A stretch of DNA of 64,000 nucleotides from positions 150,474,001 through 150,538,000 of the forward strand of contig NC_043000.1 in assembly GCF_006345805.1 (NCBI RefSeq). Reading direction: 5' to 3'. Of this stretch, positions 21,861 through 57,400 are shown in pieces. The notes under the pieces are model-generated. The model was not told the DNA's origin. It searched no databases and worked only from the letters and a program-made list of their open reading frames with translations. Every line of letters starts with the position of its first letter. Position 1 is the first letter of the stretch. Both the position numbers and the translations under genes were made by a program. This DNA is from Octopus sinensis. Taxonomy: Eukaryota.

Positions 21861-24800
21861 TCATCATCATCGTTTAACGTCCGTTTTCCGCGCTATCACG
21901 GGTTGGACGGTTTGACCAGGGTCTGGGAAGCCAGGGGCTGCACCAGGCTCCACTCTGATCTGGCAGAGTTTCTACAGAGTTCCTAACGCCAACCACTCCA
22001 CTTATAAATGATGTCCTTCTGCATTTTCCATCTACTAAATTCACTTACAAGGAATTGGTGAATAGACACTTGTCAAGTGGACTGAATGCAAATAAAGCAA
22101 AAGAAAACCAAAGCAAGCTTCTTAACCATAAATCCATGCCTGTACCCCTCTCTTGTGTGTGTGTGTATATGATGGACTCTCCTGTCAAAGATGACTTTTG
22201 AGTGTTCAGCCTTTACTGAACAACCTGCACAAATGGTTTGTTTATAGTGATCAAATGTATGTGCTGTACAGTAGCTCACTCTCTCCATCAAATCAATGTT
22301 TTCTGAACAAGTGCACCATCTACTACACGTTCAGTGTTGAAGTGGTCACAGAGCAATGTGAGATGAAGTGTTTTGCTCAAGAACACAGTGCATGGAACTA
22401 AAACCATGATTTTGTGATTGAGTGCAACATCCTAACCACTAGGCCATGCATCCTAAACATACAATACTCTTTTACTTGTTTCAGTCATTTGACTGCGGCC
22501 ATGCTGGATCACTGCCTTTAATCGAGCAACTCGACCCCGGAACTTATTCTTTTGCCGAACTGCTAAGTGACGGGGAGATATACACACCAGCATCGGTTGT
22601 CAACCAATGCTAGAGGGACAAACACAAACACACACACGCATACACATATACGACGAGCTTCTTTCAGTTTCCGTCTCCCAAATCCACTCACAAGGCTTTG
22701 GTTGGCCCGCGGCTATAGTAGAAGACACTTGCCCAAGGTGCCACGCTGTGGGACTGAACCTGGAACCATGTGGTTGGTAGACAGGCTACATACCACACAG
22801 CCACTCCTGTGCCTACAATGTTAGTAAAGAAAGAATAAAGTTATAAAAATAGTGTACACTGATTATATCCTTTTTGACGATATAATGAAAACCTAGTTAT
22901 TTACTTTTCAGAAAAGCCTAAAACACCCAAACTTTTAATTGCTGTAAGATTATTTTGTGATCAGTCTAATATGTTATATTTTGTTTTTTTTTACCTTTTG
23001 TTTATTTCAGGAAATTGAATTTCTAACTCTTTCTTTAAACCAATTGAAAGTAGCTCAAACTAAATTTAGTGAATCTCAAGAATGTCTTAGTCAAGTCACC
23101 AAGCAGAATCTGGATAACGATATTCTCGTTCCTCTTACAGGATCTGTATCCTTTTATTGCATTTGTGTATCTTATGTTGTTGTATGCAAATCCAAACTTT
23201 TATGCGAGTTCCTCAAACATATCTTATGGATTGATTCTCTTTTCAACATTGTTAGCGTTTAATGGCAGTGGTGATGGGGGTGTTTTTCAGTTACTTAATA
23301 GTGATAATAAAAAAAAATAATAATAATGAAATTATTATATACAGTGCTCAGGTGCACCACAACTTGTCAGAAAGTGCATATAGAGTACATGCAGTAATGT
23401 ACAAATGTCTGGAAAGCGAACAATGTATGAGTCAGATACATGCTTGCGTGTGTATGGAGGGGAGAAAATCAGGTGTAGTGTTGGCGAATCTCAGAATGTT
23501 TTAATAGATTCTTTAAAAAGAATCTCTGAAAGATTGTCAAGTTAAAAAAAATGACAAACTGGAAAAATTTATTAATCTCATAAATTCATGAACACCATTA
23601 AGCTTTTGTGAGAGTTGTATAAAATAAAATAAAATTTTATTGAAGAGCAGAATCTGAAAACTTATGTAATATGCCATTCTATTTGATAACAGAAAACCGA
23701 CTTCAGTTTTCTAGGAGTAAAATAACTGAATAAAATCAAAGGAGATTAAAAGTAGATTTGCATGTTTATTGTCTTTAAGCTCCTTAATGTTATTTCCAGA
23801 TGTATGTTCCTGGGAAATTATCTAATGTTGAAGAATGTTTAGTTGACATTGGTACTGGATATTATATTGAAATGGTTTGTATTACTTCATTTTATATTAA
23901 AAAAATTTAAAAAACCGAAAGCAAAACAGAAACATTAAAACTGTAAATTGAAGATTGACATATAATTATAAAATGTATGTTGTTTTAATGTTAAATTTGT
24001 AAATTTTCTGAAGTTGACTTTGCCATTTGCCCTTTTGGGGTTGATAAAATAAGTACCGTCCGAACACAAGTCGATGTAATCAACTGGCCCACTTATCCAA
24101 AATTTCACATCTTGTGCCTATGGTAGAAAGGATATTAATAGCTTCAGTTGCATACAGTCTGTTTAGCACAGCTGAATTTCTGCTTTTCTGACAGCTGTAG
24201 TTATATATAATTGTGGTAAACGTAGAAAGACATGTTAAATGAGATGAACATGACACAAATAGTTGCACTGGCATTCAAAATTTCATTGAATCTCTGTTGA
24301 CAATTATAGCTTACTAGCAGTATCGCCCGGCGTTGCTCGGGTTTGTAAGGGAAATAACTATATAAGCATTTTTAGCGATGTAAAGTATAATAGCCATTTC
24401 AATATGGCTAACCACAAAGGGGGGGGATGTTACTGTAGCTTTTTACGTTCTGAGATTTAATAATAGATTTTTAGAGAGTTACTTCCCTTATATAATAGCA
24501 AAAAAATGCATTAAAAATGGGAAAAAATGATGGTAAATCCTTTAAAAATCGTAGACTCATCGTAAACGCGCGCTAATACCCAGAAGGGCTCGATATGAAT
24601 GATGACTATAAGATACCCGGTTTTGGTTAAACTGCACCGCAAAATGTGGGAGTAGTTAGGAATCTAAATCGTAGGAGACAGACAGCACACAACTTCACTT
24701 TTATATATAAAGATTAATAAATTTTAGTGTAGGTGTAAGAAGTTAGCTTCTCAACCACATGGTCCTGGGTTTAGTCCCATTGCATGGCATTTTGGGTGTG

Positions 24801-33995: not shown

Positions 33996-34256
33996 AATGA
34001 CTGTACCAATTAGGTTGGCTCTTATTGTATATAACAGCCTCATGCTGACCAATTTTCTCTAAGTGAAATTTGGTAGTTTGCTCACAAATATGAAGTTTGT
34101 CATGAAGTGTATACATGGGTGTATATTTGTACACAGTAATTAAATTATCTTAAAAAGTATGTCAGATACAAAAGGAGGCACTCTGTATAAAATAGGTTCT
34201 CTGCCCATTTGATAAATAGCAGCTGAAATAGTGAGGTATAAATTACTAAAAGCCTT

Positions 34257-34577
34257 CATCATCATCATTGTTGTTCAACCATGGTCGAGACAATGGAATT
34301 TACCATGCTACGCCAGACTTCACGGTCCATCATGGCATTACGGAGGTCCTGTTGCTGGATGCCTGTATCCCTGGAGATTACATCAGGGTAGGAGAGTGTG
34401 CGCCCTCTGGTATTGCGAGTAGATGGCTTCCAGAGAAGAAGAGTAGAAATTACCTCTTTTTCAGCTCTACAACAATGTCCAGCAAACTGGACTCTCTTAC
34501 CTTTCACAAGAGATGTCACAGGTGGTAGTTTCCCATATATTTGCATTTTGGTTGGATGGCGCTTCCACGAGATTTTA
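34257..34577 (-). mobile_element. 3' end of second RTE-like LINE family
   Basis: ORF 34265-34546, same sequence family. Confidence 0.82.
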
Positions 34578-35587
34578 AAAGCCTTGAAAGAAGTATCCTA
34601 AAAGCCAGACCAATGATTGAAGCCAGTAAAATTACTAAAGCTTATAAAAAAATAACAGCCATTATCATTTAACATGACGGTTATGTTAGAACCAAATAAC
34701 AATATGAATATAAGTTTAGATGTACAATGTTTAATTTTAAAAACAGAACTGATTTAATTTTTAAATCATGAAAGAGCTTCTGTACAAATATGTGAAAACT
34801 GAAATTAAAATGAAAAATCATTTTAATTTGATATTTTAAGATTATAAGCAAGATAAATTGTGTGAACATTACTGAGATTATAAAGGTACTGATTCTCCAG
34901 GATTCAAATTTAAGAGAATCAAAATTTTTAATATTCTTTTCTACTCTAGGCAAAAGGCCTGAAATTTTCTTTGGCAGGAGGGGGCCAGTTGATCAGATCG
35001 ACCCCAGTATACAACTGGTACTTAATTTATCGACCCTGAAAGGATGAAAGCAAAGTCAACCTTGGCGGAATTTGAACTCAGAACCTTAAAGACAAACGAA
35101 ACACTGCTAAGCATTTCGCCCAGCGTGCTAACATTTCTGTCAGCCCACCACCTTAGAATTATTTTTAATATTACTAAATATACATATATTTACATAGCTG
35201 CCATTAAATGGCTTTATTCAAAGGGAAATGTTGACAGTATAATCAAAATAAAATGCAGCGTTTCAAAATATTTTTAGAAAATTTTATATTTCAACAAAAA
35301 TAAAATTTTTAAATTATGAAAGAGTTTCTACAAATGATGGGATGAACATTGAATTTAAAATGAAAAATAATCTTGATTTGATGTTTTAAAATTATAATCA
35401 ATATGTGTGAACATTATTGGCATGTTAAAGTATTTCTTGATTTTTCAGGAGTCAAGTTTAAAATAATCAGTGAGATTACTAAATATATTCATTATTTACT
35501 GTTTTCAAAGGAAACATTGAAAGTCTAATTAAAATCAAATGCAGCAGTTTAAAATAGCTTCAGAAAACAGAAAACTGTGTGAAATGT

Positions 35588-35748
35588 TCACTGTGTTAAT
35601 TTTTTACAGCACAAATTTATTTTCTCCTGGACATCTTGCAGTTTAACTGTTCGATTTAGTTTTAGGTATTTGCCATTCTGTGTGGTGGCCATGGAAATCC
35701 AGCTTGGTGCTACTTCTAGCAATAGTTCCAAATGCTTTTCAGCATCAA
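35588..35748 (-). CDS. CDT1: CDT1 exon 11 coding part (161 nt)
   Basis: (V)DAEKHLELLLEVAPSWISMATTQNGKYLKLNRTVKLQDVQEKINLCCKKLTQ*. Confidence 0.94.
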
Positions 35749-38700
35749 CTGAAAAAAATATGAAATGAAATAAAAATAAGGTAATTTCATTGTAGTCAGA
35801 TGTGTTGATATAACCCCTGAAATCAAGATAATTTCTGAAGTAAACTATGACATGAAACATTTCCTCTTATTCACAGTAAATCAATTTATTCTATTTTTGA
35901 ACTATTTATACTGCGTGGAGGCGCAATGGCTCAGTGGTTAGGGCAGCGGACTCGTGATCGGAGGATTGCGGTTTCAATTCCAGACCGGGCGTTGTGTGTG
36001 CTTATTGAGTGAAAACACCTAAAAGCTCCATGAGGCTCCGGTAGGGTGTGGTGGCGACCCCTGTTGTACTCTTTCGCCACAACTTTCTCGCACTCTCTCT
36101 TCTTGTTTCTTGAGTAACGCAGCGATGGACTGGCGTCCCGTCCAGCTGGGGGGAACACATACGCCACAGAAACCAAGAAACCGGGCCCATTAGCCTGGGT
36201 AGGCTTGAAAAGGGCAAAAAAAAAAAAAAAAAAAAAAAACTGTAAAAGCAGGCCATCATTAGTTTTATCAGATCTTTCTGCTTACATTAATTGAGGTACA
36301 TTTTTGAACAGATGCCTATCTTAATAAAACTTTTGAATCATATTTTTATAGCTGGAACAGAGCTCAAGCCAGATGGTGAGGAAATATTGTGGTGAAATAG
36401 GCAAGGTGACAAGTGACTGCTACTTCCTGGATGAAAAATGCTAGAAGTGGTAATTGTTGTTTAGTGTGAAGTTAGTCTTGATTGAGCAGCTTAAAGTTGT
36501 TTAGCCATTTAGTATATCAAGAAATACATTATCTGTAGTATCTTTAAGTGTGATTTAAGGGGAGTTGGTAGCTATCTAAGCAAGTAAAGCAAACAAATAG
36601 AGTCTATCTAATGTACCAAAAGTTGACAGTTGGGGTTAAGTTAGCAATGAAAAATCATTAGATATTAACTAGTTACACAGAATACGCTATGTTTCCATGT
36701 CACTATGGAGCTGGTTTTATTTATTAATTTATGTAATCACGAAATTGCTTCAACTTTAGAACACAGAGTGCCAGAGAACTCCAAAATTGGTAATACCTTT
36801 ATATCAAATAAAGAAATAAATACCTTTAGAAATTGAGGATGTATAACTTTCACAAATCTTTTCAACAACTACATTAAAAAGAAGAGTAGTTTTTCTCTCT
36901 GTAATAAAATAACTTGGATACAGTTAAGGAAAAAAATTTTGGAAGATATAATTTATTTTGCATTAATGGAAAATTGAATAAAGATAAAAACTCTTCATTT
37001 GTCATCAAGTCAGTTTTTCTATACTAGTATGAGACAACTGAATTTGTTATTGAGGTATTGTTTTATTGCCGGATGCACTTCTTGTTGCTAAACCTGACCT
37101 ATTTTTCATGTATGGGATCTGTTATTTCACACACTTTCCAAGGAGCAAATACAATAGACACTCTGGTGACAGGGGAAAGAACAATGTCATCACTTGTAGC
37201 TCAGCAACTTTTGGAAAAGTGCAAATGTAAAGCAAATGTACATATACACAGCTGGCATCTTTTAGCTTTTTGCCTATCAAATCCACTCACAATGCTTTAG
37301 CTGGCCTGTGGCTACAGTAAAATGCACTTGTTCAAGGTACCATGCAGTGGGACCGAACCCAAATCCATGTCATTGAGAAGCAAACCTCTTAATCCTAGAG
37401 CCAATACAGAATGGATTCTTATCAAGTATAGTATCATTATCATTTTAATGCTTACTTTTCTACGCTCACATGGGTTGGATGGAATTCACTGAAGCAGATT
37501 TCCTATGGCTGGATGCTCTTGCTGTCACCAATCCGCACATGTTTCCAAGCAATCTTTTATCTTTTACTTGTTTCAGTCATTAGACTGTGGCCATGCTGGG
37601 GCACCGCTTTGAAGAATTTTTAGCTGAATGTACTTAATTTTGTTAAACCTGGTACTTGTTCTATCAGTCTCCTTTGCTGAACTGCTAGGTTACTGGGAAG
37701 TAAAAACACTCACACCAGCTGTCATGCAGTGATGGAGGAATAGACACATCCACACAAACATATATACAATGGGCTTCTTTCAGCTTCCATCTACCAAAAC
37801 CACTCACAAAGCGTAGCTTGGCTTGAGGCTACAGCAGAAGATACTTGTTCAAGGTGCCATGTGGGACTGAACCCAGAACCATGTGGTTGGGAAGAAAGTT
37901 TCTTACCACACAGCCATGCCTAAGCAAGATAATAATTTCTCAGAAAACTGGGAATGTGTGACAGTTTGTATGACAGTGATGCATATTTATAACTATCATG
38001 GGATAGTCAAAACAAGGATGCGTTTGCATGCACACACAAGCTTTTTTCCAGTTTCTGTCCACCAAATCTATTTGCAAAGCCTTGGTTGGCCTGAGTGCAT
38101 AGTAAAAGGCAATAGCCTAAGGTGTCACAGCCCAAACCATGCAGTTAGGAAGCAAACTTCTTAACCATACAGTTAGAAACTACACTGCAGGGAACTCAAG
38201 ATATTTATGGAACTAATTATCTTATTTCCATCACCAATGCCTCTATATAATTCATCATCATCATTCTTTTTTGATGCAACTACTCACACACTTTGTAATA
38301 TCTTAGATACCATATTCCTTCAATCAAGGAGACAAAAGACTGATGATTTGTACATAGCAGTGCCTGTACCGATTCAGAAAGAGGTCAAACACATCATCGG
38401 TTAATGTCGGTTTTCCATGCTGCCATTGGTTGGATGGCTCGACAGGAACTGGCAAGACCAGGCACCAACCCAGGTTCCATAGTCTGTTTTGGATGCCTTT
38501 CCTAATGCCAATAACTTTACAGAGTGTCATCATCATCATCATCGTTTAGCGTCCGCTTTCCATGCTAGCATGGGTTGGACGGTTCAACTGGGGTCTGGGA
38601 AGCCCGAAGGCTGCACCAGGCCCAGTCTGATCTGGCAATGTTTCTACGGCTGGATGCCCTTCCTAACGCCAACCACTCCGTGAGTGTAGAGGGTGTTTTT

Positions 38701-41700
38701 ATGTGCCACCAACACAGGTGTCAGACGAGGCTGGCGAACGGCCACGCTCGGATGGTGTTTTTTATGTGCCACCAACACAGGTGCCAGACGAGTCTGGCAG
38801 ACGGCCACGCTCGGATGGTGTTTTTTATGTGCCACCGACACAGGTGCCAGACGAGGCTGGCGAACGGCCATGCTCGGATGGTGTTTTTTTTATGTGCCAC
38901 GGACACAGGTGCCAGACGAGTCTGGCGAACGGCCACGCTCGGATGGTGTTTTTTATGTGCCACCGACACAGGTGCCAGACGAGGCTGGCGAACGACCACG
39001 CTCGGATGGTGTTTTTTATGTGCCACCGACACAGGTGCCAGACGAGTCTGGCGAACGGCCACGCTCGGATGGTGTTTTTTATGTGCCACCGACACAGGTG
39101 CCAGACGAGTCTGGCGAACGGCCACGCTCGGATGGTGTTTTTTATGTGCCACCGACACAGGTGCCAGACGAGGCTGGCGAACGACCACGCTCGGATGGTG
39201 TTTTTTATGTGCCACCGACACAGGTGCCAGACGAGGCTGGCGAACGGCCACGCTCGGATGGTGTTTTTTATGTGCCACCGGCACGGAGGCCAGGCACTAA
39301 GTGTTTTTAAAATTTTTTATGTGGTTCTATCACCAAAACTTTTTTACATATCACAACAAACTATGAAAAGCTGTCAACTGAATTATAAAATAAGAATTCA
39401 AACTGATTATCTCCGAAGATACATTGATGCAGAATTTTAAGGATACGTTCGCATAATACGATAAATAGTAGGCAGTCGTTTCAGCATTGCTTCTCTCTGA
39501 GCTTTTAAAGGAGTTTGAGTAATGGTTTCTTCTAAGCGTTTTGTTTCCTTTGCCCGGATCTGAAATGTTTAAAACCAGAAACAATTTTACATTGTAATTA
39601 ACAAAAAAAAAAAAATTTGTGGTAGAGAAATAACACTAACAACATGCAAATGTTCTCTTTACTATTACTGTATATACTCTTACTCTTTTACTTGTTTCAG
39701 TCATTTGACTGCGGCCATGCTGGAGCACTGCCTTTAGTCGAGCAAATCGACCCCGGGACTTATTCTTTGTAAGCCCAGTACTTATTCTATCGGTCTCTTT
39801 TGCCGAACCGCTAAGTGACGGGGACGCAAACACACCAGCATCGGTTGTCAAGCAATGCTAGAGGGACAAACACAGACACACATACATACATATATACGAC
39901 AGGCTTCTTTCAGTTTCCGTCTACCAAATCCACTCACAAGGCATTGGTCGGCCCGGGGCTATAGCAGAAGACACTTGCCCAAGATGCCACGCAGTGGGAC
40001 TGAAACCGGAACCATGTGGTTGGTAGGCAAGCTACTTACCACACAGCCACTCCTGCGCCAGTATATTTTAAAGAATATAAAATTTATATACTTTGTATTG
40101 GTATAAATGATATAAGTACATATTCAGTTGTTCAATGCAGTAGATAACGACTGAAATACTTCACTGAGTAATCTTTAGTTTTTGTTCTTCTAAATGTGTT
40201 GTCATTTGTCCAGAATCCAAATACTGTCAGAAGAAATTTTTACATTTTATCTCTTGAGAAGAGAAGGAAACTTGGGATAATTCAGATCATTAAGTCCCCA
40301 TCTCCAAAAAAGAAAATCCTAGGGCTGGCAAAGAAACACTTTTATTTGTTTGACTTTGGTCTTTCCATGCTAGGAGTAGAATGTATTTGAGGTAGGGTCT
40401 TATGACTGGATGTTGCCCCTGTTACCAACCATTACCCATTTTTTGAGAACAAGAATGTTTTCGAAAATATGGAGCTCGTGGTCGTTATGACAACAAAAAA
40501 TGCTTACTCAAGTGAAGTCATGGAATGTTAACATTCACAGATATACATGTATGCGACACACTTTCTAAAGTTCGCATCACTCAAATTCACTTGGCCCAGG
40601 GCTATAATAGGAGACACTTGCCCAAGATGCAATGCAGTGGAACTGAACCCCAAACCATGCGTTTGTGAAGTCAAAATATTTCAGAGAATTTTACTTTTAT
40701 ATTACAAAGAAACATGTTTGATAAAATTTAAATATGGTTTAAGATAAGCAAGTTTAATGTATAAGTAGCAATTGAAAACAATTTAAAACGTGTTAGGATA
40801 GTTGAATTATAAAATCCAAAAGTGCATTGCATTAAAAGCTAATTAGGGTAAAATTATGGGATGTCAAAAATGGAATAAAGTCGATATAGAAATAATAGAA
40901 TACAGATGGTAAAAGGTATATCATAAAATATACAAATACCAAGAACTACATAGAAGGGATACAACTATATAAATTACAATGTAAAATTCCATCATTACAT
41001 TTTAAATATTGTGAAATTTGTCTCGGATAATATATATCAAATTTACTGAAAGAGACTCATACTGGTATGGGAAAAATTAACATCATGTATAGCAGATAGA
41101 ATAAGCAAGGTGAGAAAGTGGTTGTTGTTGTTATTAAGCAACAAGACAGGTAAGGGTGATTAGGTGATGGCCTAGGGCTTAGGGGCAGGGGACCCCAGAC
41201 CTTGGAAAAAAAAAAAAAAATTTGGTCGTCTTGTTGTAGTCGAGGGCTCTTTGTTGATGCCTGACACTACTGGGAGGTGGCCCTTGAAGTCGCTGGAAAT
41301 GGAGATCTCCAGGTCCAAATTCTTGGACGGCTGAGAAAGTGGTTGAATATTAAAGGTATTAGTCAATACATGAAGATAAATAGTAAATAATACTTACTCT
41401 TTCAAGTAACCCAGAGGGGATTCCTTTGATTGATGTATCAACTTTTGGTGTAGATGGTTTATTGGGTGAGCTATTAGCCTTTGAAACATTTATCAAAGCA
41501 CTTTCCACCTAACGAAATAAAAAAAAATTTTTTAGACTGAAAATTTTCCAACTCTGCAGTTTCAGAAAACAATAAAAGAAAGGTATACTTGTTAGTGATA
41601 TTGTATGTCTATGGCAAATGATGTGCATGTAGAAAATTTATTTTGTGAGGAAATGCAAACAGCATATACTCTCTTTTACTCTTTTGTTTCAGTCATTTGA

Positions 41701-44700
41701 CTGCGGCCATAAAGTCAGATACTTAAAATGTAGAGCAAATTTTGTGCTGCAATGCCCATTGAAACATCAATCCATTCAGGTTCATTACAACCAGTCAAAA
41801 CCAGGGGAATCCTTGATGATGTACACCCAAATCTTGATGATGGGCAGTTTTTTCCCCCAGTATGTGGAACTGTCAGAGTTTCTATCCATTGTCATTTAGA
41901 AACTGGAATTTCAGTTTCTTTATCACTTCATATCTTCATTTGAACTAGAGTAAGAATCGTTAGTGTCACAGTTACAATTATCTCGAATTCACAGGCAAAA
42001 GGCAGTTTGCGTTTGCATGGCCATATATCAAAGAAAATTTAATGTACTGAATGATGCTGACAGTTACTGAGACTTGATTTACAAATATTTGTCTTAGCAA
42101 TGATATTTCTGTCAAGAACGAATGTCTTTCAAACTCTGTTAGACTTTGCAAGCTTCAATCACAAAATGCCTCACAAAGGTTCAAAAAGCTTCATAAAGAA
42201 AATGAGAAAACAACAATTTTCTTTCAGTCACAGGAAATCTGCGTAATTGAAAGAGTTGTTTCCCTTTTGGAATTTTTTTTTTGGTATTTAATAAGGCATT
42301 GCTAGATAAAAGCATGCAGTGCCGTTTTTAACTGTTCAGCGAAAGACTTTGAAGTGTGCAGAACATAAACTTTCTAAGAGTTAGGGAAAATATAATTTTC
42401 ACAAACGTTTTGATCTGGGGTTTTTTTTTTTTTACCAGATGGATACTCTCTTTTTACTTGTTTCAGTCATATGACTGCGGCCATGCTGGAGCACCGCCTT
42501 TAATCGAGTAACTCGACCCCGGGACTTATTCTTTTGTAAGCCCAGTACTTATTCTATCAGTCTCTTTTGCCGAACCGCTAAGTGACGGGGACGTAAACAC
42601 ACCAGCATCGGTTGTCAAGCAATGCTAGGGGGACAAACACAGACACACACACACATATATATATACATATATAGGACAGGCTTCTTTCAGTTTCCGTCTA
42701 CCAAATCCACTCACAAGGCATTGGCTGGCCCAGAGCTATAGCAGAAGACACTTGCCCAAGATGCCACGCAGTGGGACTGAACCCGGAACCGCATGGTTAG
42801 TTAGCAAGCTACTTACCACACAGCCACTCCTGCGCCTATGATATAAAGTTAAATATTTACTGAAGATTCCATTCAACCTCCCCACAGCATCTAGTCACAT
42901 CAACAAGAATGGGCACAACAGGAGTTGGAAAATCAACCATGTGTCTTAAAATTATTAGTTTGTACATCTTCATTAAATAGCTAAAATTGCTCAAGTGCTT
43001 TCTCTTAGGTTGTGACCTCCTAGTCTATATCTAAATTTTTTTCTGAAACAAGTTTTAACCGACACACCATACCCAAAATACAACAGTCATAGGAAGAGGA
43101 AGAACCTATTACTGACCTCAAGACGAAAAGAAAAACTGAAACTTACCTTAGGGTGTAGTTTCCCCCTTGTTGCATTTAAAACCTCATGAGCAGTTTGATA
43201 AACCTTGACATACGGAGGCTGGGGTAAAGGAGAAGGTTGAATGTCAGGTACTTGGTCTAATCGGAACTTAGGATGCCAACGAATAAGTCTGTCATCAGAA
43301 ACTGTCATAGGCTTTGGTAGGCTTTTCAGGAATTCCTACAATAAAAAGGATTTTGATATCATTCTCTCTTTCGTTTATTACGAACAGAAAAAAAAAAAAA
43401 AAAAAGGATCTTTTCGGTTTGAACGGCAGTTTTTTAACATTTCTAGGAAACTAAAATATTTTAAACTTCGTATACTGGTAGAATGTGTTTATATAACATC
43501 TTTTTCTCTTGGCTTTATTGAGAAAATTCTATCGTTTGTAAGACATTTGTTGTTGTTTTTTCTTCAATTTCTGCAATTTAAACCAATCAATTATGTCTAC
43601 TGAGGTAAAAAACATTATGTGCCGTATGAATATGTTCCTCGTTTAAGAAACAGATTGGGTTTATTTACATTTGTGAAGAAAAAAGGATACCCCCCTCCCC
43701 TAACCCTAAAACAGATTGAAATGCAATAGATCGATACTAGGGTCATAATTATGGGTGACAATTTCATATGACACCGCTAGAAAAAAAAAAAAAAAAAGAG
43801 ATTCTCTTTTACCGCTAACCTCTCAAAAGTATAGAACATGGTTTTGCAATTATACAGAGTTATGTACCTTGAACCAAGCAAGATAAAAATCCTCGTTTAA
43901 CATCTGCACTATCTTTTTTGTATTACTCTTTTACTTGTTTCAGTCATTTGACTGCGGCCATGCTGGAGCACCGCCCTTAATCGAGCAACTCGACCCCGAG
44001 ACTTATTCTTTTGTAAGCCCAGTACTTATTCTATCGGTCTCTTTTGCCGAACCGCTATGTAACGGGGGACATAAACACATCAGCATCGGTTGTCAAGCAA
44101 TGCTAGGGGGACAAACACAGACACACAAACACACCCACGCATATACGACAGGCTTCTTTCAGTTTCCGTCTACCAAATCCACTCACAAGGCTTTGGTCGG
44201 CCCGAGGCTATAGCAGAAGACACTTGCCCAAGATGCCACGCAGTGGGACTGAACCCAGAACCATGTGGTTGGTAAGCAAGCTACTTACCACACAGCCACT
44301 CCTGCGCCTATTATAGAAAAGAATTTAATGTAAAAGCATAGTATATGATTTTCAATAATATGATTTTCATGTTACCAAAGAGAGTGGTAGAGACTATGAT
44401 GTGGAAACCATGCCAGAACAGACAATGGAGTCTGGTGTGGCCCCCGGCCGTACCAGCTTTGGTCAAACCATCCAACCCATGCCAGCATGGAAAACGGACA
44501 TTAGCTGATGATGATATATAAACCAAATTCTATCTATCTATCCGCTCAGTCAAAGTCGACTCTCGGTCACTCGTTGGATCAGTGTCCTCCAGTCAGTTCT
44601 ATCCTGGGCCGCTTCCCTCAGATTGGCTATGTCCATTCCGGTATCCCTCTTGATGGTGTCAAGCCAGCGGGTTCTTGGTCGGGCCTCTTCCTCTCCTGCC

Positions 44701-45466
44701 ACTGACCATTCCGAGAATGATGTCCTTCTCCAGGGATTTTCTCCAACCAAATTACATCATTAAAACGTAACTTACAAGCTTCATTATTTGTTACTAATCA
44801 AACACACAAGAACGAACTATTTTTAAAAAATTGAGAAAAAAACTTACTTTATGCAACGTCATGACGCTCTTCACCAAATTGGCATGGAACATTTTCTTTC
44901 TGGCAATGAAATGAGTGGCTGTAAGATGCGGGTTGCCATTTTCAGGATCTGAAGAGGAGAAGAAAAGAAAAAGGAAATCGTCACCGTTTCAAGACAAATT
45001 GTATAAATTTAGCTTAATGTACTGTGTATATCATATCTCTCACGATTTGTTTCAGTCATTGAACTGCAGACTTCGGAAACATTTTTTCACGCTCAGAGTT
45101 GCTGAAGCATGGAATAAACTGCCTGCGTCAGTTGTTGACTGCCATGACACTGCATCTTTTAAGGCCCTCATGCTTTCCGAAATCCGCCGAAACTACACCT
45201 GATTATATATACACTTTAGATGAGTTGTAGTGCACCTGAGCACTGTACACAATTATTATTATTATTATTATTATTATTATACCATGGTATTGTCTTGAAG
45301 GGTTTAGGCTATCAAATTGACCATGGCACCTAGTGGATTGGTAAAAAGAAACTGATAAGACTAAGTTATGGGAATGTAAACAAACCAACACTGTTTGTCA
45401 AGTAGTGCTGGAGGGGAAACACAGACACACACATTATTTATCTATCTATGTGTATATGTATGTATA

Positions 45467-45499
<33 letters not shown>

Positions 45500-48400
45500 C
45501 ATCGTCTTCATCATCATCGTTTAACGTCCGTTTTCCATGCTAGCATGGGTTGGACGGTTCAACTGGGGTCTGGGAAGCCAGAAGGCTGCACCAGGCCCAG
45601 TCTGATCTGGCAGTGTTTCTACAGCTGGATGCCCTTCCTAACGCCAACCACTCCGTGAGTGTAGTGGGTGCTTTTTACGTGCCACCTGCACACAAACACA
45701 CATATATATCATTATGGTTATATATATATATATCGTTATGGTAATATTTTGCCAAATAAACACATGCACTATATACTAGTTCTTCATTTCAGCTTTATCA
45801 TTTTTCTTATTTTAGTATCCTTCATCTGAAATCGTTTGCCACACATCTGGTGACCTCTTCAGCAACTCTGCATCCCATGTGTCTCCCCCTGTCCTATTCA
45901 GTACATCCTATCTTTCTATGGTGTGTATCTTTACCTGCATGTGCACGCGCATGCACACACACACACACAGAGGCTTCCACACAGTTTCTACCTACCAAAT
46001 TCACTTAAATGTATTAGTTGGCCTGAGGTTATAGCACAAGACATTTGTCAAAGGTGCTGTACAGTGGGACTGAACCTGAAACCAAGCGAGTGCAGTATCG
46101 AGAGATGTGGCTTTGTGTCAAGTGATGAAGAATATGACAAAGGGATAGAAACAGGGATCTTGCTGCAGAGAATATGCATGGCTACCCTTCCGGCTTCACA
46201 GACCCCAGTTGAACCGTCCAACCCATGCTAGCATGGAAAGCGGACGCTAAATGATGATGATGATGATGATGATGATGACCCCAGCTGGAAAAGACAGAAG
46301 AGGATGAAAATCCATCAGGATGTACCCTCGGGTTGCAGGAAAGTGAATATAAGTGGTAGAGAGGATTGGACAGGGTAAGTGAGTGGGTATGTTTGTGAGA
46401 GTGGCAGATGGATAGGGACAGAGGGGAATGCAAACAGTGAGAAATATGAGTGGATGCTTGGAGGGCAACTGTGAGAGAGATGAATAATAATAATAGACAA
46501 ATTAACACAATGAACAGTCTTCTAAAAAACATCCATAGGCGCAGGAGTGGCTGTGTGGTAAGCAGCTTACTTACCAACCACATGCTTCCGGGTTCAGTCC
46601 AACTCTGTGGCACCTTGGGTAAATATCTTCTTATTTCTTTATTGCTCACAAGGGGCTAAACATAGAGGGGACAAACAAGGACAGACAAAGGGATTAAGCC
46701 GATTACATCGACCCCAGTGCATAACTGGTACTTAATTTATCGACCCCGAAAAATGAAAGGCAAAATCGACCTCGGCAGAATTTGAACTCCAAACGTAACG
46801 GCACATGAAATACCGCCAGGCATTTCGCCCAGCGTGCTAATGTTTCTGCCAGCTCGCTGCCTTGGGTAAGTATCTTCTACTATAGCCTCGGGCTGACCAA
46901 AGCCTTGAGTGGATTGGCAGAGGGAAACTGAACGAAGCCCATCGTGTATGTATGTGTGTGTGTATATATATATATATATATACACATATATATGTGTGTG
47001 TGTGTGTGTGTGTTTGTGCACTTCTGTGTTTGTCCCTGCAACATCGCTTGACAACTGATGCTGGTGTGTTTGTGACCTCTGTAACTTAGCAGTTCGGCAA
47101 AAGAGACCAACAGAATAAATACTACTCTTACAAAGAATAAGTCCTGGGGTCAATTTGCTCGACTAAAGGCGGTGCTCCAGCATGGCTGCAGTCAAATGAC
47201 TGAAACAAAAACAAGAATATATATGTATGTACGAAAGTGTGTGCTTCTTAGTGTTTGTTCCCACCACTGCTTGACAACTGGCGATGGTGTGTTTATGTCC
47301 CTGTAACTAAGCAGTTTGGCAAAAGAGATCAATGGAATAAGTACTAAGCTATAAAAAAAAAAAAAAAAAAAAAGGGAAAAACAATGTACTAAGGTTATTG
47401 ATTTGACTAAAAATTCTTGAAGGCAGTGCTCCAGCATGGCTGCAATCTAATGACTGAAACGAGTAAAAGATAGAAGAGGATAGTCATTTATGCTTACTGC
47501 TGTTCTCCATATTGGATTCTTCTAATTGGGGGGTGATAGTCAGTTGGTAGCCCTGATATTTGTAACCAAGTTTTGGAAGACCTTTTTCTTGTTTGAAGTC
47601 ATATGCATTAGGGTATACAGTTTTTATTTGACCAAGAACCTCTTGCTTAAAATCTCTGGAAATACAAAGAGAAAAACATACAAAAGGTTTGTTTTAATTG
47701 ATATTGAATCTAATATAGAATAAGATGAAATACATTTCTGAAGAGTATTTTTTTTTTCAGTGTAAAATATACACTATTCAGATTCTTGAAATATATTACA
47801 CAAAAATGTATTATATGCCAGTAAAGATACATAAACAAGAGCACTCAGAGTGTGCAAACCTCCGCCAAGGCAACATCAACGTCCTCTCAACGATTAGCCA
47901 GAGATGATTTTTAAAATGAGAATATCTGAAATAAACTTGACTGCTTTCACAAATGAGAATACTAAAAATGAACCCGACCGCTCTCAAAAATTAAGTGAAA
48001 AAAAACAGGAAAAATAATCCAGAATCCTTGTCCAGTACTGGATCGATCCCAAAATCTAATCAATTCATGCCAGTCACAAGGTCAAACCTCCCTGAAAGTT
48101 TCATCTGAATCCATCCAGTGGTTCTTGAGATATCTTGTCCAAGGACAAACAAATGCAACTGAAAACAATACCTCCCTCTTTTGGTAGTTCAGAGGTAATA
48201 AGCATACTTTTTATTGAATAACAATAAATTGCTTCAAGTTTTGGGACAAGGCCAACAGTTTTAGGTGGAGGGGAAGTCCATAACACTGACCCTCAGTACT
48301 TGGCCAGTAGTTATACTGTCAACCTTGGAGGGATGAAAAGCCAAGTTGGATTTGGCAGAAATGCTGCTATGCATTTTGTCCAAGACACTAATGATTCTTC

Positions 48401-51400
48401 CAGCTTACTACCTTAATAATAATAATTCTAATTTTAGCACAAGATTAGCAATTTTGAGGGTAGAGAGTAAGCAGATTGCATTAACCCAGCACTTGACTTG
48501 GCTCTATATTTTATCAACCCCTGAAATCCCTTGGTGGGATTTGACCTCAGAATGGAGCTGAAAGAAATATGACAACCAAAATACATTTATTACAGAATTT
48601 AAAATAAAACTAATTTTAATAAATTCACCTTTTGAGACTTTTTTCAACAGCATCTTTGAGCTTGGAAAAAGTGCAAACTTCTAAGCGGTTGTGTAACATG
48701 CGGACAACATCATCTACTCTTTGAAAGAATTCCTCTAAGACTGTATAGGAATAAGGGAGGGTGAGTGTAGATGGTATTGGCAAAATAAGATGCTGGAACC
48801 GTTTATAAGCAGGAGTCCTGAAACAGAGACATGACAATTTAGCAAGGATAAGAAATATAATCAAAATATATTTTGTGGGACATGAGAAGGAAAAGAAGAT
48901 TATGTTAAAATTTTGATAAATATTATTCAATTAAAAAGAATTACAAATACAGAAAACAAAGTTGTCATATTTTAGGTATCTCTCTCTCTCTCTCTCTTTT
49001 TTTTCTCTCTTTTACTTGTTTCAGTCATTTGACTGCGGCCATGCTGGAGCACCGCCTTTAATCGAGCAACTCGACCCCGGGACTTATTCTTTTGTAAGCC
49101 CAGTACTTATTCTATCGGTCTCTTTTGCTGAACCGCCAAGTGACGGGGACGTAAACACACTAGCATTGGTTGTCAAGCAATGCCAGGGGGACAAACACAG
49201 ACATACAAACATACACGCACACACATATATATATATATATACATATATACATATATACGACGGGCTTCTTTCAGTTTCCGTCTACCAAATCCACTCACAA
49301 GGCTTTGGTCGGCCCGAGGCTATAGTAGAAGACACTTGCCCAAGGTGCCACACAGTGGGACTGAACCAGGAACCATGTGGTTGGTTAGCAAGCTACTTAC
49401 CACACGGCCACTCCTGCGCCTATATAAATTGTTTATAGTTTAATATTTGCTATCCTCCATCCCCCCAAAACCCTTTTCTTTTTGTTGTTTGTTCTTTTTA
49501 AATATGTTTCCAAAAAAGTTAATTAAAAACAGAAATTTTGAAGCAAACGAGGATTTAAATGAAACTATTTTTTCTATCAGTGACACGTAAAAGCACCATC
49601 CGTTTCGTGGCCGTTTGCCAGCTCTGTCTGGCACCTGTGCGGGTGGCACATAAAAAGCACCCACTACACTCACGGAGTGGTTGGCGTTAGGAAGGGCATC
49701 CAGCCATAGAAACACTGCCAGATCAGACTGGGCCTGGCGCAGCCTTCTGGCTTCACACACCCCAGTTGAACCGTCCAACCCATGCTAGCATGGAAAGCGG
49801 ACGTTAAACGATGATGAAGATTTAAATGAAACTATTTTTTTATCCATGTTAGCATGAATTAGATGAATCGACATTGTTTTGTAGCTGCCCTTCTTGCTGC
49901 TAACTCTCACCTACTTTTCAAGTGAAGGAAAATTTCCTTCCATTCAGCTTCAAAGCACAGAGCTGCCAGACAACTTGTTAACAGAGGAATGACAACAATG
50001 ACTATAGCTTATATGATCACAGTAAGTAAACATTCTCATAGACATACACATCATAGGTGCAGGAGTGGCTGTGTGGTAAGTAGCTTGTTAACCAACCACA
50101 TGGTTCCGGGTTCAGTCCCACTGCGTGGCATCTTGGGCAAGTGTCTTCTGCTATAGCCCCGGGCCGACCAATGCCTTGTGAGTGGATTTGGTAGACGGAA
50201 ACTGAAAGAAGCCTGTCGTATATATGTATATGTATGTGTGTGTTTGTGTGTCTGTGTTTGTCCCCCTAGCATTGCTTGACAACCGATGCTGGTGTGTTTA
50301 CGTCCCCGTCACTTAGCGGTTCGGCAAAAAGAGACCGATAGAATAAGTACTGGGCTTACAAAGAATAAGTCCCGGGGTCGATTTGCTCGACTAAAGGCGG
50401 TGCTCCAGCATGGCCACAGTCAAAATGACTGAAACAAGTAAAAGAGTAAAGAGTATCATCATTTAGCAACCCTTTTCCATGCTGGCATGGATTGGAAGGC
50501 TTGACTGGAACTGGTAAGCTAGAGAGCTCCAGCCTGGTTTTGTTTCTACAGCTGGATGCCTCTCCTAATGCCAATCACTTCACAGAGTGTACTGGCCATC
50601 TTTTACATGTTGCTAACATGGGTGTCATGTATATGAAGAGCTTTGTACCAAATTCAATAATCAACTCAGAGGCAATAGTAGACACTTCCTGAAAGTGCTG
50701 TGCAGGGAGACTGAACCAGGAACCACATGATTGTGAAGCAAACCTCTTAGCCACACTGCCAGATAATTAACAAGCTTAAACTGATTCTTAGCCAATGAGG
50801 AAACCTATGTAATCACTCAAACTGCTAGAAATAGAAGTCAGATCTTTCTCAAATCATTCACTACTGTCATTAAAAAGGAGGATGCATTGGATAATGTAGT
50901 CCTTGTAGTCCTATATAAAAAGAACAGGACAGTCATGGCTGGAACACGTTTGATCGAGTCCTGCTTTATCAAGGTTGGCAGGGAGTTAAACAACAGAAAC
51001 AATAGTCAATCACCCTCACCTTCCAATTCACAAAGTGCAACAAGTCACATTGGTTTATATAATCCTAGATAGCTTGTGACATAAAACAAAAAAAAAAAGG
51101 TGTGTAATGGTCTGATTCTTCAGAGCGGCCCTAAGACTAAGCAAAAATTTTTACTTACTTGTTAACTGAGTCAGACTTCTCTTTTTCAAATTCAGGTTGA
51201 GTCTTACAGGATGAGCTTTTAGGTTTTTCTTTGGATTTTGTTGCAGCTTTGAGTTCCTTAATTAACAGTAATTGCTTCTTCAGTTCTTCCACTTTACTAC
51301 ATTTCATGAGATCAATTTTGACTTTTTCTGGTGTTAAATTTAGCTGAAAGAATTCAAATAAATGTTGGTTATTTTTGAAAGAAACCATTACTTCAATATA

Positions 51401-54400
51401 GAAATATAGACTAGTTTATTGCAGACATTGGAATAATGCTTGAATAAACTGGATATGAAATCCAAATCTTTAGATGAACTTCAACACAAGAATTTTTTCT
51501 TTTTTGCAAGAAAATTACAATATCATAAGCTTTTGAATTGTATTTATTATGTCCTATAATTTGTTCTTAAGGTTCAGAGTCTCTTGTGTAAAAACATTGT
51601 TCTGCAACTTAGCTCCATTAAGAAGATAATTGTAATTAATCAACCTGAAGATAAAATGCAGGAATGTTATAGGAAATAAGAATTTCAATCCTTTTCTTAC
51701 AAGTTTATTTACACTAGAATCATATTATACAAAAGAGTTTGTTAATTTTCAACAAGGGTGATGAGAAAGAACCCACAGCATTCAGCTTTTAAGAACATTA
51801 CTGCAATCTTACCCTAAATTATGATGGATTAAAGAAACTAAGAAAATAGTACAAATTTTCTATTTTTCAAACCTATTAGCCATGGCTCATAAGTTACTGT
51901 GACCTTTAGTTTTTAGAAAATAACTTCCTTTTCATTTATCATAATCTTATTACAATACACAAATCTGGGTTTCTCAGGTGGATTATTGCAGAAAATTGTA
52001 AATTGTATTAGATATAAATTATTTAGATGTCACTTATTCTAATATAGAACAGATAGGATATTACTATAAAAATAATAAAAAAACAATTAATATATCTTCA
52101 ACTTTAACTGTATATTCTGTTGCTAAATGAATTAAATTTTGATTGCAAAAATTTTACAATTTTAAGTGCATAGTAATTGGAAAGCAGCAACAAAAACAAA
52201 AATCACTAAACATATGTGGTCAGATTTAGTTGTGGTTGTCCTAAAAATCACAGCAATATATGACCATATATGTCCACTGAAATTATATTTGAACTCACAA
52301 TGCACATAAATTCATAAAATTTTGCATAGTCAGTCAGACAACGTAGTGATAATTGTTTCATTGACAGTAACCAGTTCAAGTCTATCTGGTTTCTTGATTA
52401 GCAGCATCTCGTGACGCTGGGCTAATTTTATAAAGATTAAATGCAGATTTTGAGCCCTGGTGAAATTTCACAATAGTTGAGGTAAAGCAGTACCTTATTT
52501 CTTAATTCTAGAATGTATCACAATTAAGCCAAGGTACAATGTATAATTTTCAGTAATAAATACACTAAATATCAATATTCAGGGGAATCATAACTCTACC
52601 TGTCTGACTGTAGTAGTTTTTACAGGATCTGTTGCTTTTTGAAGTTCTTTGCTGTCATTTGAACCAGATTCTGTAGTCTGGCTGTGTACGGACATCTGTT
52701 GTGACCGCATTCTTCGTAACTTTTGAGGAGTTTCAGGCAAAGGAGAAATGGGCCTAGGTATATTGCTCACTAAAGGAAATTCTAACTCCCAGAAATTACT
52801 GTCTTCAAGTTCTTTTTCCTCCTCAATATTCTGTTGAGATAAATAAATGATAAATTTAATCAATATGAAATATTTTTTATTTGATGTGACAAACCATGTT
52901 GATTGTTGCTTTCACTTTTTCAGCAGTGTACGCTTCAACCTTCTTCAGGTGCGTTGTGAGTCACTAAGGTGAAGCATACACACCTGAAATGTAGTGAAAG
53001 CAACAATCAAGATGAAGACACTACTCCAAATAATAACATATCTAAATTCCTCATAGAAATATAGAATTGTATTTCAAAACAATAAAGACAAACATAAATA
53101 ATATTAGTTAAACCTGTTATTTATAACTAGCAGTATCGCCCGGCGTTGCTCGGGTTTGTAAGGGAAATAACTATATAAGCATTTTTAGAGATGTAAAGTA
53201 TAATAGCCATCTCAATATGGCTAACCACTAAGTGGGGGTGTTACTGTAGCTTTTTATGTTCTGAGATTTAATAATACATTTTTAGAGAGTTACTTCCCTT
53301 ATATAATAGCAAAAAAATGCATTAAAAACGGGGAAAAAATGATGGTAAATTTATTTTTAAATCGTAGACGCGCGCTAATACCCAGAAGGGCTTGATATGA
53401 ATCACGACTATAAGATACCTGCTTTTGATTACACTGCACCGCAAAATGGAGTAGTTAGGAATCTAAATCGTAGGAGACAGACACACAACTTCACTTTTAT
53501 ATATAAAGATTTTTCCCATTTCTTAACATATTCCTAAAAAGCCAGCACAATCATCTTTGGTAATTTAAGTCAGCTTGGCACCAAACAATACACTGTAAAT
53601 TGATTGACACCAGGCTGACTTTACTGAACTTTTGGGCAAAATCACTATTGCCAGAATCCACGCAAAGCTCTTAGATTCAAACAAGTATATAGATTGCCTG
53701 GGATGTAAGAATATATACTTATACAAACAACATAAATGTAAATAAACATGCAGATTTTCTATGGCTGGATGCCTTTCCTATTACCAACCCTCAACTAGCT
53801 TCCTTCAGTTTCTGCCTACCAAATCCACTCATAAGGCCTTGGTAGACCTGGGAGCTGTAAAAGAGATTTGCTCAAAACACCATGCAGTAGAACTGAACCC
53901 AGAGCCATGCACATTCACATAGGCATTTATGTAAATACTTATACATACATATGCAAACAGACTACTAAGTACACAAACCAATGTCTGTCTGTCTGTCTAT
54001 CTACATATAAGAGGTTTTGGTATCCAGAAGACCCAAAATGCAGGTAAGGCGATGTAAGTGCTGCAGAAGGACTGTAGTTAGACTTCTGGTTTGATAATAG
54101 TGTGAGTGAGGAGTCTAATGTGGGTTGTGTGTGAGCATGTATAAATGAGACAAACAAAGTCAAGGCAGTGTGAAATTTCTCGAAACATTTATAAAGAGAA
54201 AGGTAGCCTTACAGCTGTTTCAGAGATATGAAGGATATCCCTTCAACAGAGACAATACAAGAGAGTTAAATATAAGAAATTAGTTTGGAAAGGGAGAGAT
54301 ATAGGAAGTATAAATGGAAATAAAAGAATAAAAATAAAAATATATGTTGGATGTTACAAGTGCTGGGTAGAATGGGTATTTTGTGTGGTAAGTAGCTTGT

Positions 54401-57400
54401 TTACCAACCACATGGTTCCGGGTTCAGTCCCACTGCGTGGCACGTTGGGCAAGTGTCTTCTACTATAGCCTCGGGCCGACCAATGCCTTGTGAGTGGATT
54501 TGGTAGACGGAAACTGAAAGAAGCCCGTCGTATATATGTATATATATGCGTGTGTGTGTTTGTGTGTCTGTGTTTGTCCCTCTAGCATTGCTTGACAACC
54601 GATGCTGGTGTGTTTGCGTCCCCGTCACTTAGCGGTTCGGCAAAAGAGACCGATAGAATAAGTACTGGGCTTACAAAAGAATAAGTCCCGGGGTCGAGTT
54701 GCTCGATTAAAGGTGGTGCTCCAGCATGGCCGCAGTCAAATGACTGAAACAAGTAAAAGAGTATATATATATCACTATCACCATTTAATGTCTGTCTTCC
54801 ATACTGGCATAGGTCAAACAGTTGCTGGCAAACCAGAGGACGGTGCCAAGCTCCAGTATCTGCATCGGCATGATTTTTATGGTTGGATGCCCTTCCTAAC
54901 AACAAACACCTACACACACACATATTCTTTTCTACTCTAGTCACAAGGCATGAAATTTTTGGGGAGGGGGGGGGGCAGTCGATTAGATTGATCCCAGTAT
55001 GCAGCTGGTACTTTTAATTTATTGACCCTGAAAGGACGAAAGGCAAAGTTGACCTCGGCGGAATTTGAACTCAGAACGTAAACACAGATGAAATACCGCT
55101 AAGCATTTCGCCCAGCATGCTAGTGTTTCAGCCAGCTTGCCGTCTTACCTACACGTATATTGATTGACACAAATTACCAAAGACAATTGTGCATGAGGTT
55201 CTGGGAATAATGAAGAAACTGTTACATGTATGTGTACATATATATTTATGGTAAAGCAACAATTTTTATTACTATACAAAGCTTGTAATATTTCTTCAAA
55301 ACATTTTAATGTTTACTTGCTGCAGAACTGTAAAAGAATGTAACCACTGATGGCAACACCAGTTCATAAAAAAATTCACACCATCCTACATTTAGTTGTC
55401 AACAATAAATTTGAGAGAGAAACTTTGCATGTATACATATATACACACACACACACACATGCGTATGTGTGTGTATGGATCTGTGTATCATACTTAACCC
55501 TTTTGTTACTGTATTTATTTTGAGATACTCTGTGTTTCTTTCAATTACTTTAGATATATCAAAGAATTTAGTAAAATAACTAACTTAGTTATCATTGAGC
55601 TAGTGTTAGGAACATAAACTGTGACTGAGGTTTGGTGGAAGATTTTAATGCAAAACTTATGAAAACAAGACATTTGTACTAAAGATTCAGAGCCGGTTTC
55701 AGCTGGGTTGGTAACGAAAGGGTTAATGTAAATACATCATTAAAAGGCAAATTTACTGTAGTATTCGTCTAGAGATAACATCTCTTATGGATTTGCTGCA
55801 TTTAAAAACACTATACATACATTGTAGGGAAACCAAAATCATTCCTGCAATGGTCAGCAAGAAACCAGATGCATTTCAACTTTGTTGGGCCTCATCAAGG
55901 GCACATACTCATAGCCAACCATAAGCATAAGTAATATTTATATGATATTTAATGTCTGCTTTCCATGTTGGAAGGTTCAACATGATCCAGTGGATCAGAG
56001 GACCATTTTGCACCAATGCTTCATGGTTTCTACAGCTGGATTTCCTTCCCCTTATGCCAAACTTTACATAATGTATTTGGTGTTTCTTTCCATGGCATTA
56101 GCGCTAGTGAGATTGTCATGTAATAACATGCAAGACTTATAGAGCATCCTCAATTGAGTGGGAATATAGTAGAGGGGTAGGTTAATTCATGCTTAGTTTT
56201 AAGAGGTTAAAATATGATTGAAGGGACAGGAACAAATTTGTTGTTGTTGAGGAGGTACATAGCCATTCTGCATTATATTAGGACAGGTAGGAGTAATTGA
56301 GGTTGAGTTGGAAATACATATATAATAGCAGTATAGCCCAGCATTGCTCGGGTTTGTGTTTTAGTTGCGCTTAAAACGGCAGACTTTGATGTCGCGTTAA
56401 CAAAGTTTTGACATAGTTTCAATCTTTTTTGAAAAGTAAAAATTTTGCATTATGTAGCTTTAAGTGAAAATTTTTCTGGTTGAAATACACCGAGAAATGG
56501 CAACACAGCAGTCAAAAAACCGTAAAAAACAGGGATTTTCATAGAAAAAAAGCACGTTTTTGATGTAAATAATTTTTGGTCTTAACATGGTCCAATTTGA
56601 ATTTTTTCTTCTACGGAATGAAGAGCAAGCCTTCTTCTATCATACTTTCAATTTTGGTCAGCTTGCGTTGCAGGGTCTCGGAGGAGATAGTGTTAGTTGA
56701 AGGCTACCAAACCTGCCACACACAGACAACTTCAGCATTATATGTACGATGATGGAGGTATGTTGGATTGTTGGTATGGCTGTGAAATAGTATTATAACA
56801 CATCCTATATGTATATATGTATGAAAAATCAGTGAACTAGGTTAGCCTCCATTCAAGCAGTTGCATGATTAGAGGCATTCCAGGTTTTTCATCTATCCTT
56901 ACCTCCTCACATTTACCCTCTATAACTTAAGGCTATGTCCTAACACCTTATCACCATCTTTCCTTCATCAGCTATGGTGTCTTCTCTAGAGGTAGGACAT
57001 CTGTTTATATCTTTCGATCATACTCCTTGCCTATCAACATCTGGTACAACTCACTTCCCTCAATCAAAAGGATCATTTTTTTGTGAGCTACTTGGCAACC
57101 TCACCAGTGATGGTGATATGAAGAAGCACCCAGTACATTCTGTAAAATGGTTGGTGCTGAGAATGGCACCCGGCTTTAAAAAACCATGCCAAAACGAACA
57201 CTGGAGTTTGACACAATCCTCTGACCTGTTGGATCCTATTGAGCCATCCCAAACCATGCCAGCATGGCACATAGATGCTAAATGATAATGTGACACCCAA
57301 AACTACATCCAGTATATTCTGTCTTCTTAAAAACAATAGGAACTGATTCAAGGGAGACCAGGTGCTATTTCTAACATGCTGAGTGACAATGCAGTAGCAG

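Follow-up and report, generated by a model that had tools for sequence, protein, structure and literature searches.

Is the ninth intron of CDT1 in Octopus sinensis a genuine minor-spliceosome (U12-type) intron, and was it gained in the octopus lineage or lost from the animals that lack it? CDT1, the gene for DNA replication factor Cdt1, is carried on the minus strand of the window, by which we mean the whole stretch of 64,000 nucleotides (nt) of O. sinensis contig NC_043000.1 (positions 150,474,001 to 150,538,000) that was analyzed. A preliminary description of this DNA had proposed that a U12-type intron interrupts CDT1 at a position that appears to be intron-less in human. We conclude that intron 9 is probably a genuine U12-type intron that is removed by the minor spliceosome, most likely existed before cnidarians and bilaterians separated, has been kept in cephalopods and some other animals, and was cleanly deleted in vertebrates, insects and several others.

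What identifies the gene as CDT1? Stop-to-stop frames and Pfam scans of single exons were used to name the gene, and full-length comparisons were made with the protein P0001. Three single exons, scanned separately, match the Pfam CDT1 domain PF08839 (E 3e-10, 2e-11 and 4.5e-10). A single-exon protein search led to P0001, which is XP_036358463.1, the Octopus sinensis Cdt1 isoform X2, and whose cluster, comprising O. sinensis and O. vulgaris, is named DNA replication factor Cdt1. P0001 aligns to the window by tblastn in 11 collinear pieces from 62854 to 35591 on the minus strand, with 92-100% identity in each. The preliminary assignment of the gene to CDT1 is thus borne out by Pfam domains, the tblastn match to XP_036358463.1 and cluster names. 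The CDT1_C domain (PF16679) matches the last three exons (E 7e-5, 0.04 and 0.0014), each alone below the whole-protein cut-off, at profile positions 6-42, 44-72 and 74-95, in order, and the codon split by intron 9 therefore corresponds to CDT1_C profile position 43. A script that used only 9-codon local windows around each CDT1 junction served as the junction check, and canonical GT-AG boundaries were fixed for nine of the ten introns. The boundary of intron 5 (47487-47516 / 44950-44961, minus strand) was not fixed: P0001 and the window differ here. The RefSeq isoforms X1 (679 amino acids) and X2 (674 amino acids) also differ around intron 5, which suggests alternative donor use.

The features of CDT1 on which the argument depends are as follows.

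35591..62854, minus strand: CDT1 coding region, with 11 coding exons and 10 introns (tblastn with P0001, Pfam exon by exon)
39560..41397, minus strand: intron 8, U2-type (GTAAGT...CAG), phase 0, at the position of human intron 8 (junction script, RNA-like contigs)
39447..39559, minus strand: exon 9, 113 nt, from I555 through the second base of T592 (RNA-like contig ends in four runs, Pfam, PDB alignment)
36913..39446, minus strand: intron 9, U12-type, GT-AG subtype, 2534 nt, phase 2 (the sole canonical boundary pair that restores the protein; skipped in RNA-like contigs)
39439..39446, minus strand: U12-type 5' splice site GTATCCTT, then AA (read directly)
36923..36930, minus strand: U12-type branch site TCCTTAAC, with a T run before it and AG 10 nt downstream (read directly)
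36913..36914, minus strand: 3' splice site AG (sequence and junction script)
36824..36912, minus strand: exon 10, 89 nt, from the third base of T592 to the first of V622 (89-letter contig gap, depth bins, Pfam)
35749..36823, minus strand: intron 10, U2-type (GTATTT...CAG), phase 1, at a position common to all genomic loci examined (junction script)
35591..35748, minus strand: last coding exon, V622-Q674 and the stop codon (sequence, tblastn, RNA-like contigs)

Both ends of intron 9 carry the signals of the minor spliceosome. The upstream exon ends in CGAAC at 39447, and the intron opens with GTATCCTTAA at 39446 when the minus strand is read directly. Its 5' splice site GTATCCTT fits [AG]TATCCTT and stands directly at an RNA-supported exon boundary (39446..39439). 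At the other end, the last base of TTTTTCCTTAAC is 36923, TGTATCCAAG comes next, and the downstream exon opens with TTATTTT at 36912. The branch site TCCTTAAC fits TCCTTRAY at the required spacing of about 10-15 nt from the 3' splice site, with 11-12 nt between that site and the branch-site A, and the subsequent TGTATCCAAG follows without an intervening polypyrimidine tract. The intron has GT...AG termini and falls in phase 2 within codon 592 (Thr, AC/T; a slash marks a splice junction here and below), between exons of 113 and 89 nt that sum to 202 nt. Among the nine resolved CDT1 introns, only intron 9 has U12-type signals. The textbook signals, the phase and the exon sum of the preliminary description were all recovered by direct reading and the junction script. 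As a separate observation, 9.4 tandem copies of a 63-nt repeat (95% matches) occupy 38692..39284 within intron 9 as passenger sequence, and a further GTATCCTT at 26022 on the plus strand was rejected as a donor because it is not at any recognisable exon end.

Could intron 9 be an ordinary U2-type intron that happens to resemble the U12 consensus? Its GT-AG ends are compatible with this explanation, and neither motif is commoner in the window than chance would provide, given that RTATCCTT occurs 10 times versus 6.3 expected and TCCTTAAC occurs twice versus 2.5 expected. However, the two motifs match perfectly and stand at the correct distances from a single junction with RNA support, a coincidence to which we assign, by our own estimate, a chance of approximately 1e-8. 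Moreover, the segment from the branch site to the AG lacks a polypyrimidine tract, and C at positions +5 and +6 is established to be poor for pairing with U1 and U6. The genes for minor small nuclear RNAs (snRNAs) are also present in the same genome. The search for them covered U11, U12 and U6atac and returned scores of 126.6 bits for U12, 96.9 bits for U6atac and 94.5 bits for U11, all above the Rfam cut-offs. The U12 gene includes GTAAGGAAAAT, the segment responsible for pairing with the branch site. We therefore regard a U2-type identity as very improbable, and intron 9 appears to be a U12-type intron of the GT-AG subtype whose removal would be carried out by U11/U12. The snRNA search also gave 43 U6atac matches above the Rfam cut-off over many contigs, which may represent either a multi-copy family or a large number of pseudogenes, in addition to four U12 matches (three above the cut-off) and five U11 matches.

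Are exons 9 and 10 truly joined in transcripts? Contigs from four small runs, which belong to four studies with two organism labels and whose RNA nature is a guess, were placed on 35500-41499. In all four runs, one contig covers 35500/35502-35748, continues with 89 letters and then covers 39447-39559, and in three of the four it continues directly from 41398. The depth bins reproduce 36824-36912 exactly (7.94 = 20.9 x 76/200; 1.36 = 20.9 x 13/200). The contig junctions and depth bins therefore indicate that transcripts use exactly the predicted intron 9 sites, and the RefSeq Cdt1 protein uses this junction too. No evidence was found for an annotation or assembly artefact, in which exons 9 and 10 would not be joined in this manner, although the runs that carry the junction are only guessed to be RNA. 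The junction is reproduced to the base in contigs of all four studies, and joining the exons brings back the conserved Y-F-I-T-E-R-K. Furthermore, the alternative AG acceptor approximately 11 nt downstream (~36902) was rejected because it shifts the frame into a stop. An artefact is thus exceedingly improbable. No coverage of exon-adjacent intron sequence was seen in the RNA-like contigs of the four runs, and low-level retention is compatible with the contig data. As a side observation, repeats that resemble short interspersed elements (SINEs) at ~38500-38700 and ~39700-40100 have an enormous summed contig depth in the RNA-like runs.

What would retention of intron 9 mean for the protein? Read-through gives ACG TAT CCT TAA, that is, Thr-Tyr-Pro-stop, and the open frame 39568..39440 ends in ...IMRTYP, in agreement with the immediate stop that had been predicted for the retained form. 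An unspliced transcript would lose residues 593-674, the last 82 residues and more than half of CDT1_C, or would be subject to decay. The stop lies inside retained intron 9, and full-length octopus CDT1 therefore needs minor splicing; a dependence of CDT1 expression on minor splicing in octopus would follow as a trivial consequence of gene anatomy, and it is the only part of the coupling between licensing and minor splicing suggested in the preliminary description that the present data bear out. A stronger proposal is that lineages with the minor intron use its removal as a controlled, rate-limiting step. If U12 splicing were slow or could be switched, retention and the premature stop would determine how much CDT1 is made and would couple origin licensing to the activity of the minor spliceosome in proliferating cells; in vertebrates, this control would have passed to other licensing genes, such as ORC3 and CDC45. 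We consider this regulatory role quite unlikely.

The human gene appears to lack an intron at this site. In a PDB sequence search, the 37 residues of exon 9 align without gaps to residues 426-462 of human CDT1 (I426-R462), a match that is weak alone (E 1.2) and collinear, whereas the same search with the 29 residues of exon 10 gave no match. From the gap-free alignment, the split codon Thr592 therefore corresponds to human Ser463. Human CDT1 has 10 exons, and c.1276-24A>G is a branch-point variant of intron 8 (PMC11715027) that causes intron 8 retention and exon 9 skipping (PMC9636908). Because this variant is located in intron 8, human exon 9 begins with c.1276, the opening base of the Ile426 codon, which coincides with the start of octopus exon 9 (phase 0, before IRAKE). 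Given the 10 exons, only one intron remains after c.1276 in human, compared with two in octopus. As far as the lists were covered, CDT1 is not among the human or mouse minor-intron genes in the MIDB supplements (PMC6717393). A literature search yielded nothing on point that links CDT1 to minor or U12 introns, and a literature search for human splice-variant names near c.1388/1389 and c.1477/1478 found none.

Other vertebrates provide DNA for the same region. The tetrapod-like contigs L019 and L020, which are 63% identical to the frog protein, read ...ccccaag/ATCCGG, a 202-nt open frame and G/gtaggag, and the vertebrate-like open reading frame fragment P0104 contains the unbroken exon with intron-derived flanks. 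Thus, the claim that human CDT1 is intron-less here holds on indirect grounds, namely the published structure (10 exons, c.1276), the MIDB lists and the uninterrupted 202-nt exon in non-human vertebrates. Since the exon is fused, the vertebrate loss is a deletion and not a conversion to the U2 type.

How widely is the intron absent? A metagenome scan was made with an alignment of 16 orthologues. The 67-codon block aligns without gaps, with octopus exon 9 as columns 1-37 and exon 10 as columns 39-67. The block is unbroken in all 22 fetched metagenome loci that cover the region. The termite-gut contigs L025-L027, and also L029, contain the 202-nt exon, bounded by an AG acceptor and a GT donor, and the JGI fragments P0108-P0116 and P0105 concur in an uninterrupted exon, as do insect-like fragments among the open reading frames. 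The lophotrochozoan-like sequences L015-L017, P0102 and P0103 lack the U12-site intron as well as the intron before IRAKE, and they keep the donor after the 202 nt. Donor and acceptor positions across the loci thus show wide sharing of the phase-0 intron before the block and very wide sharing of the phase-1 intron after it. In L015 (650-850), L017 (779-979), P0102 and P0103, two adjacent introns are absent that a close relative, P0117, appears to have, and the pattern in the L015-L017 group looks like a joint loss of neighbouring introns.

Does any other animal carry the intron? Short predicted proteins were screened with a profile of the 67-codon block, and the matches were mostly single genomic open frames. 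P0117 (64 amino acids, from a 6.1-Mb contig) consists of intron-like sequence followed by Gln/IRAKEA... and ends in ...IIR-S-Y-P-stop. P0119 and five members of its cluster (contigs of 37-200 kb) read Lys/IRQKEE... and then ...ILK-T-Y-P-F-Y-Q... In both P0117 and P0119, CDT1 homology stops at the codon aligned to octopus T592 and is followed by Tyr-Pro and a codon that begins with T, which is the product of xxG/TAT CCT T. A typical U2 donor in phase 2 would give a stop or Tyr-Val. The matching downstream piece, represented by P0122/P0130, reads LTIFSR/YFVSERK and fits TTRAC, 12 bases, AG and the exon. These features suggest that the intron in the P0117 and P0119/P0122 lineages is likewise of the U12 type. 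In a different set of fragments, P0118, P0120 and P0121, which are relatives of L003, the sequence diverges from the L003 protein right after the column-37 Arg (ARIAR/F[VG]YK...); this break would be compatible with a U2-like donor (GTTTGT...) that precedes the octopus site by one codon.

The P0119 group is identical to the L001-like P0133 at 33 of 37 positions in this exon. In a maximum-likelihood tree, the full-length L001 open reading frame and the related P0134 group with the coral Montipora and the EukProt protein 'Seg...GoldUCD', which we take to be from the jellyfish Aurelia (bootstrap 99, SH-aLRT 97), and molluscs including octopus form their own clade (100/99). P0117 is approximately 40% identical to cephalopod sequences and is closest to the L015-L017 group and Patella. 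The P0119 lineage is thus likely to belong to the cnidarian clade, and P0117 is likely to be lophotrochozoan-like.

Was the intron gained or lost? The preliminary description had left both options, an ancestral minor intron lost in vertebrates or a rare U12 gain. If gained, the U12 intron would have arisen in the cephalopod lineage, similar introns would have arisen separately elsewhere and vertebrates would never have had it. This scenario accords with the absence of an intron at this site from all 22 metagenome loci (0/22), including the lophotrochozoan-like L015-L017, and with octopus being the only DNA-level sighting of the intron. However, read-through in two other lineages occurs at an identical codon and phase and leaves the same Tyr-Pro signature, and to gain a U12 intron three times independently at one position is far less probable than to lose it repeatedly. 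We therefore judge a gain unlikely and favour ancestry with loss, to which the read-through fragments from two other lineages lend weight.

Octopus, a lineage of the cnidarian clade and a further invertebrate lineage appear to share one site, one phase and one intron type, for which an old U12 intron with repeated precise loss is the best explanation. In the history that we propose from these sequence comparisons, a U12 intron would have been present at phase 2 of the codon corresponding to human Ser463, within the MCM-binding winged-helix domain CDT1_C, before the cnidarian-bilaterian split. Cephalopods and some other lineages would have retained it, whereas a clean deletion would have fused the 113- and 89-nt exons into one 202-nt exon in vertebrates, insects and several further lineages. 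Repeated loss is the usual fate of minor introns (PMC10639083), and the antiquity of this intron is accordingly presented here as probable.

Several points weigh against this history. Close relatives of both fragment lineages are without the intron (P0106 in one case; L015-L017, P0102 and P0103 in the other), and these intron-less relatives therefore require at least five separate losses. The GTATCC of P0117, P0119 and P0122 is deduced from two residues in protein read-through only, and the taxa of the fragments are deduced from similarity and one gene tree. In addition, the human structure downstream of c.1276 is taken from papers and from other vertebrates.

CDT1 is not the only gene in the window with a minor intron. 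A PFDN5-like prefoldin gene, which is convergent to CDT1 and matches PF02996 on three exons, contains the following feature.

23146..23799, plus strand: U12-type intron of the PFDN5-like prefoldin neighbour (signals, Pfam Prefoldin on the flanking exons, MIDB)

Its donor is TCT/GTATCCTTTT at 23146, and TCCTTAAT is found 11 nt before the AG at 23799. The same 5' site is listed for human and mouse PFDN5 in MIDB (PMC6717393). The earlier remark that two convergent neighbours both carry minor introns is accurate, and the second intron occupies a known human and mouse site; most simply, the adjacency of two minor-intron genes is a coincidence. Between the convergent genes, reverse-transcriptase-like open frames and tandem or SINE repeats are found at ~33000-34600 (minus strand) and 26700-27300.

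What does the CDT1 intron contribute beyond this locus? CDT1 joins the replication-licensing genes with a present or former minor intron. The intron provides a clean example of precise U12-intron loss, in which 113 and 89 nt were fused into a 202-nt exon conserved in vertebrates and insects, and those who study intron evolution gain a useful marker position. For replication biology it is of modest interest, since CDT1 is not a minor-intron gene in human or mouse; nor does this intron provide the tempting connection between minor-spliceosome dwarfism and the CDT1 type of Meier-Gorlin syndrome.

Three known systems place the octopus intron in context. Human CDT1 exon 9 has the same start, phase and protein register as octopus exon 9, with no gaps over residues 426-462, but octopus has two introns after this start, whereas human has one and the exon of other vertebrates is an unbroken 202 nt. 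Among the minor-intron genes that MIDB lists for human and/or mouse are PFDN5, ORC3, CDC45, DNA2, POLA2 and RFC5 (PMC6717393). The last five resemble octopus CDT1 in that they are licensing or firing genes with GT-AG U12 introns, GTATCCTT-like donors and TCCTTRAY branch sites; they differ in that the carrier here is a mollusc CDT1, a gene that is not among the human and mouse entries listed. The U12 intron of PFDN5 in human, mouse and the octopus neighbour is likewise a minor intron and interrupts the same codon boundary, TCT/GTATCCTTT, from vertebrates to octopus. Unlike the CDT1 intron, however, the PFDN5 intron has been kept in vertebrates.

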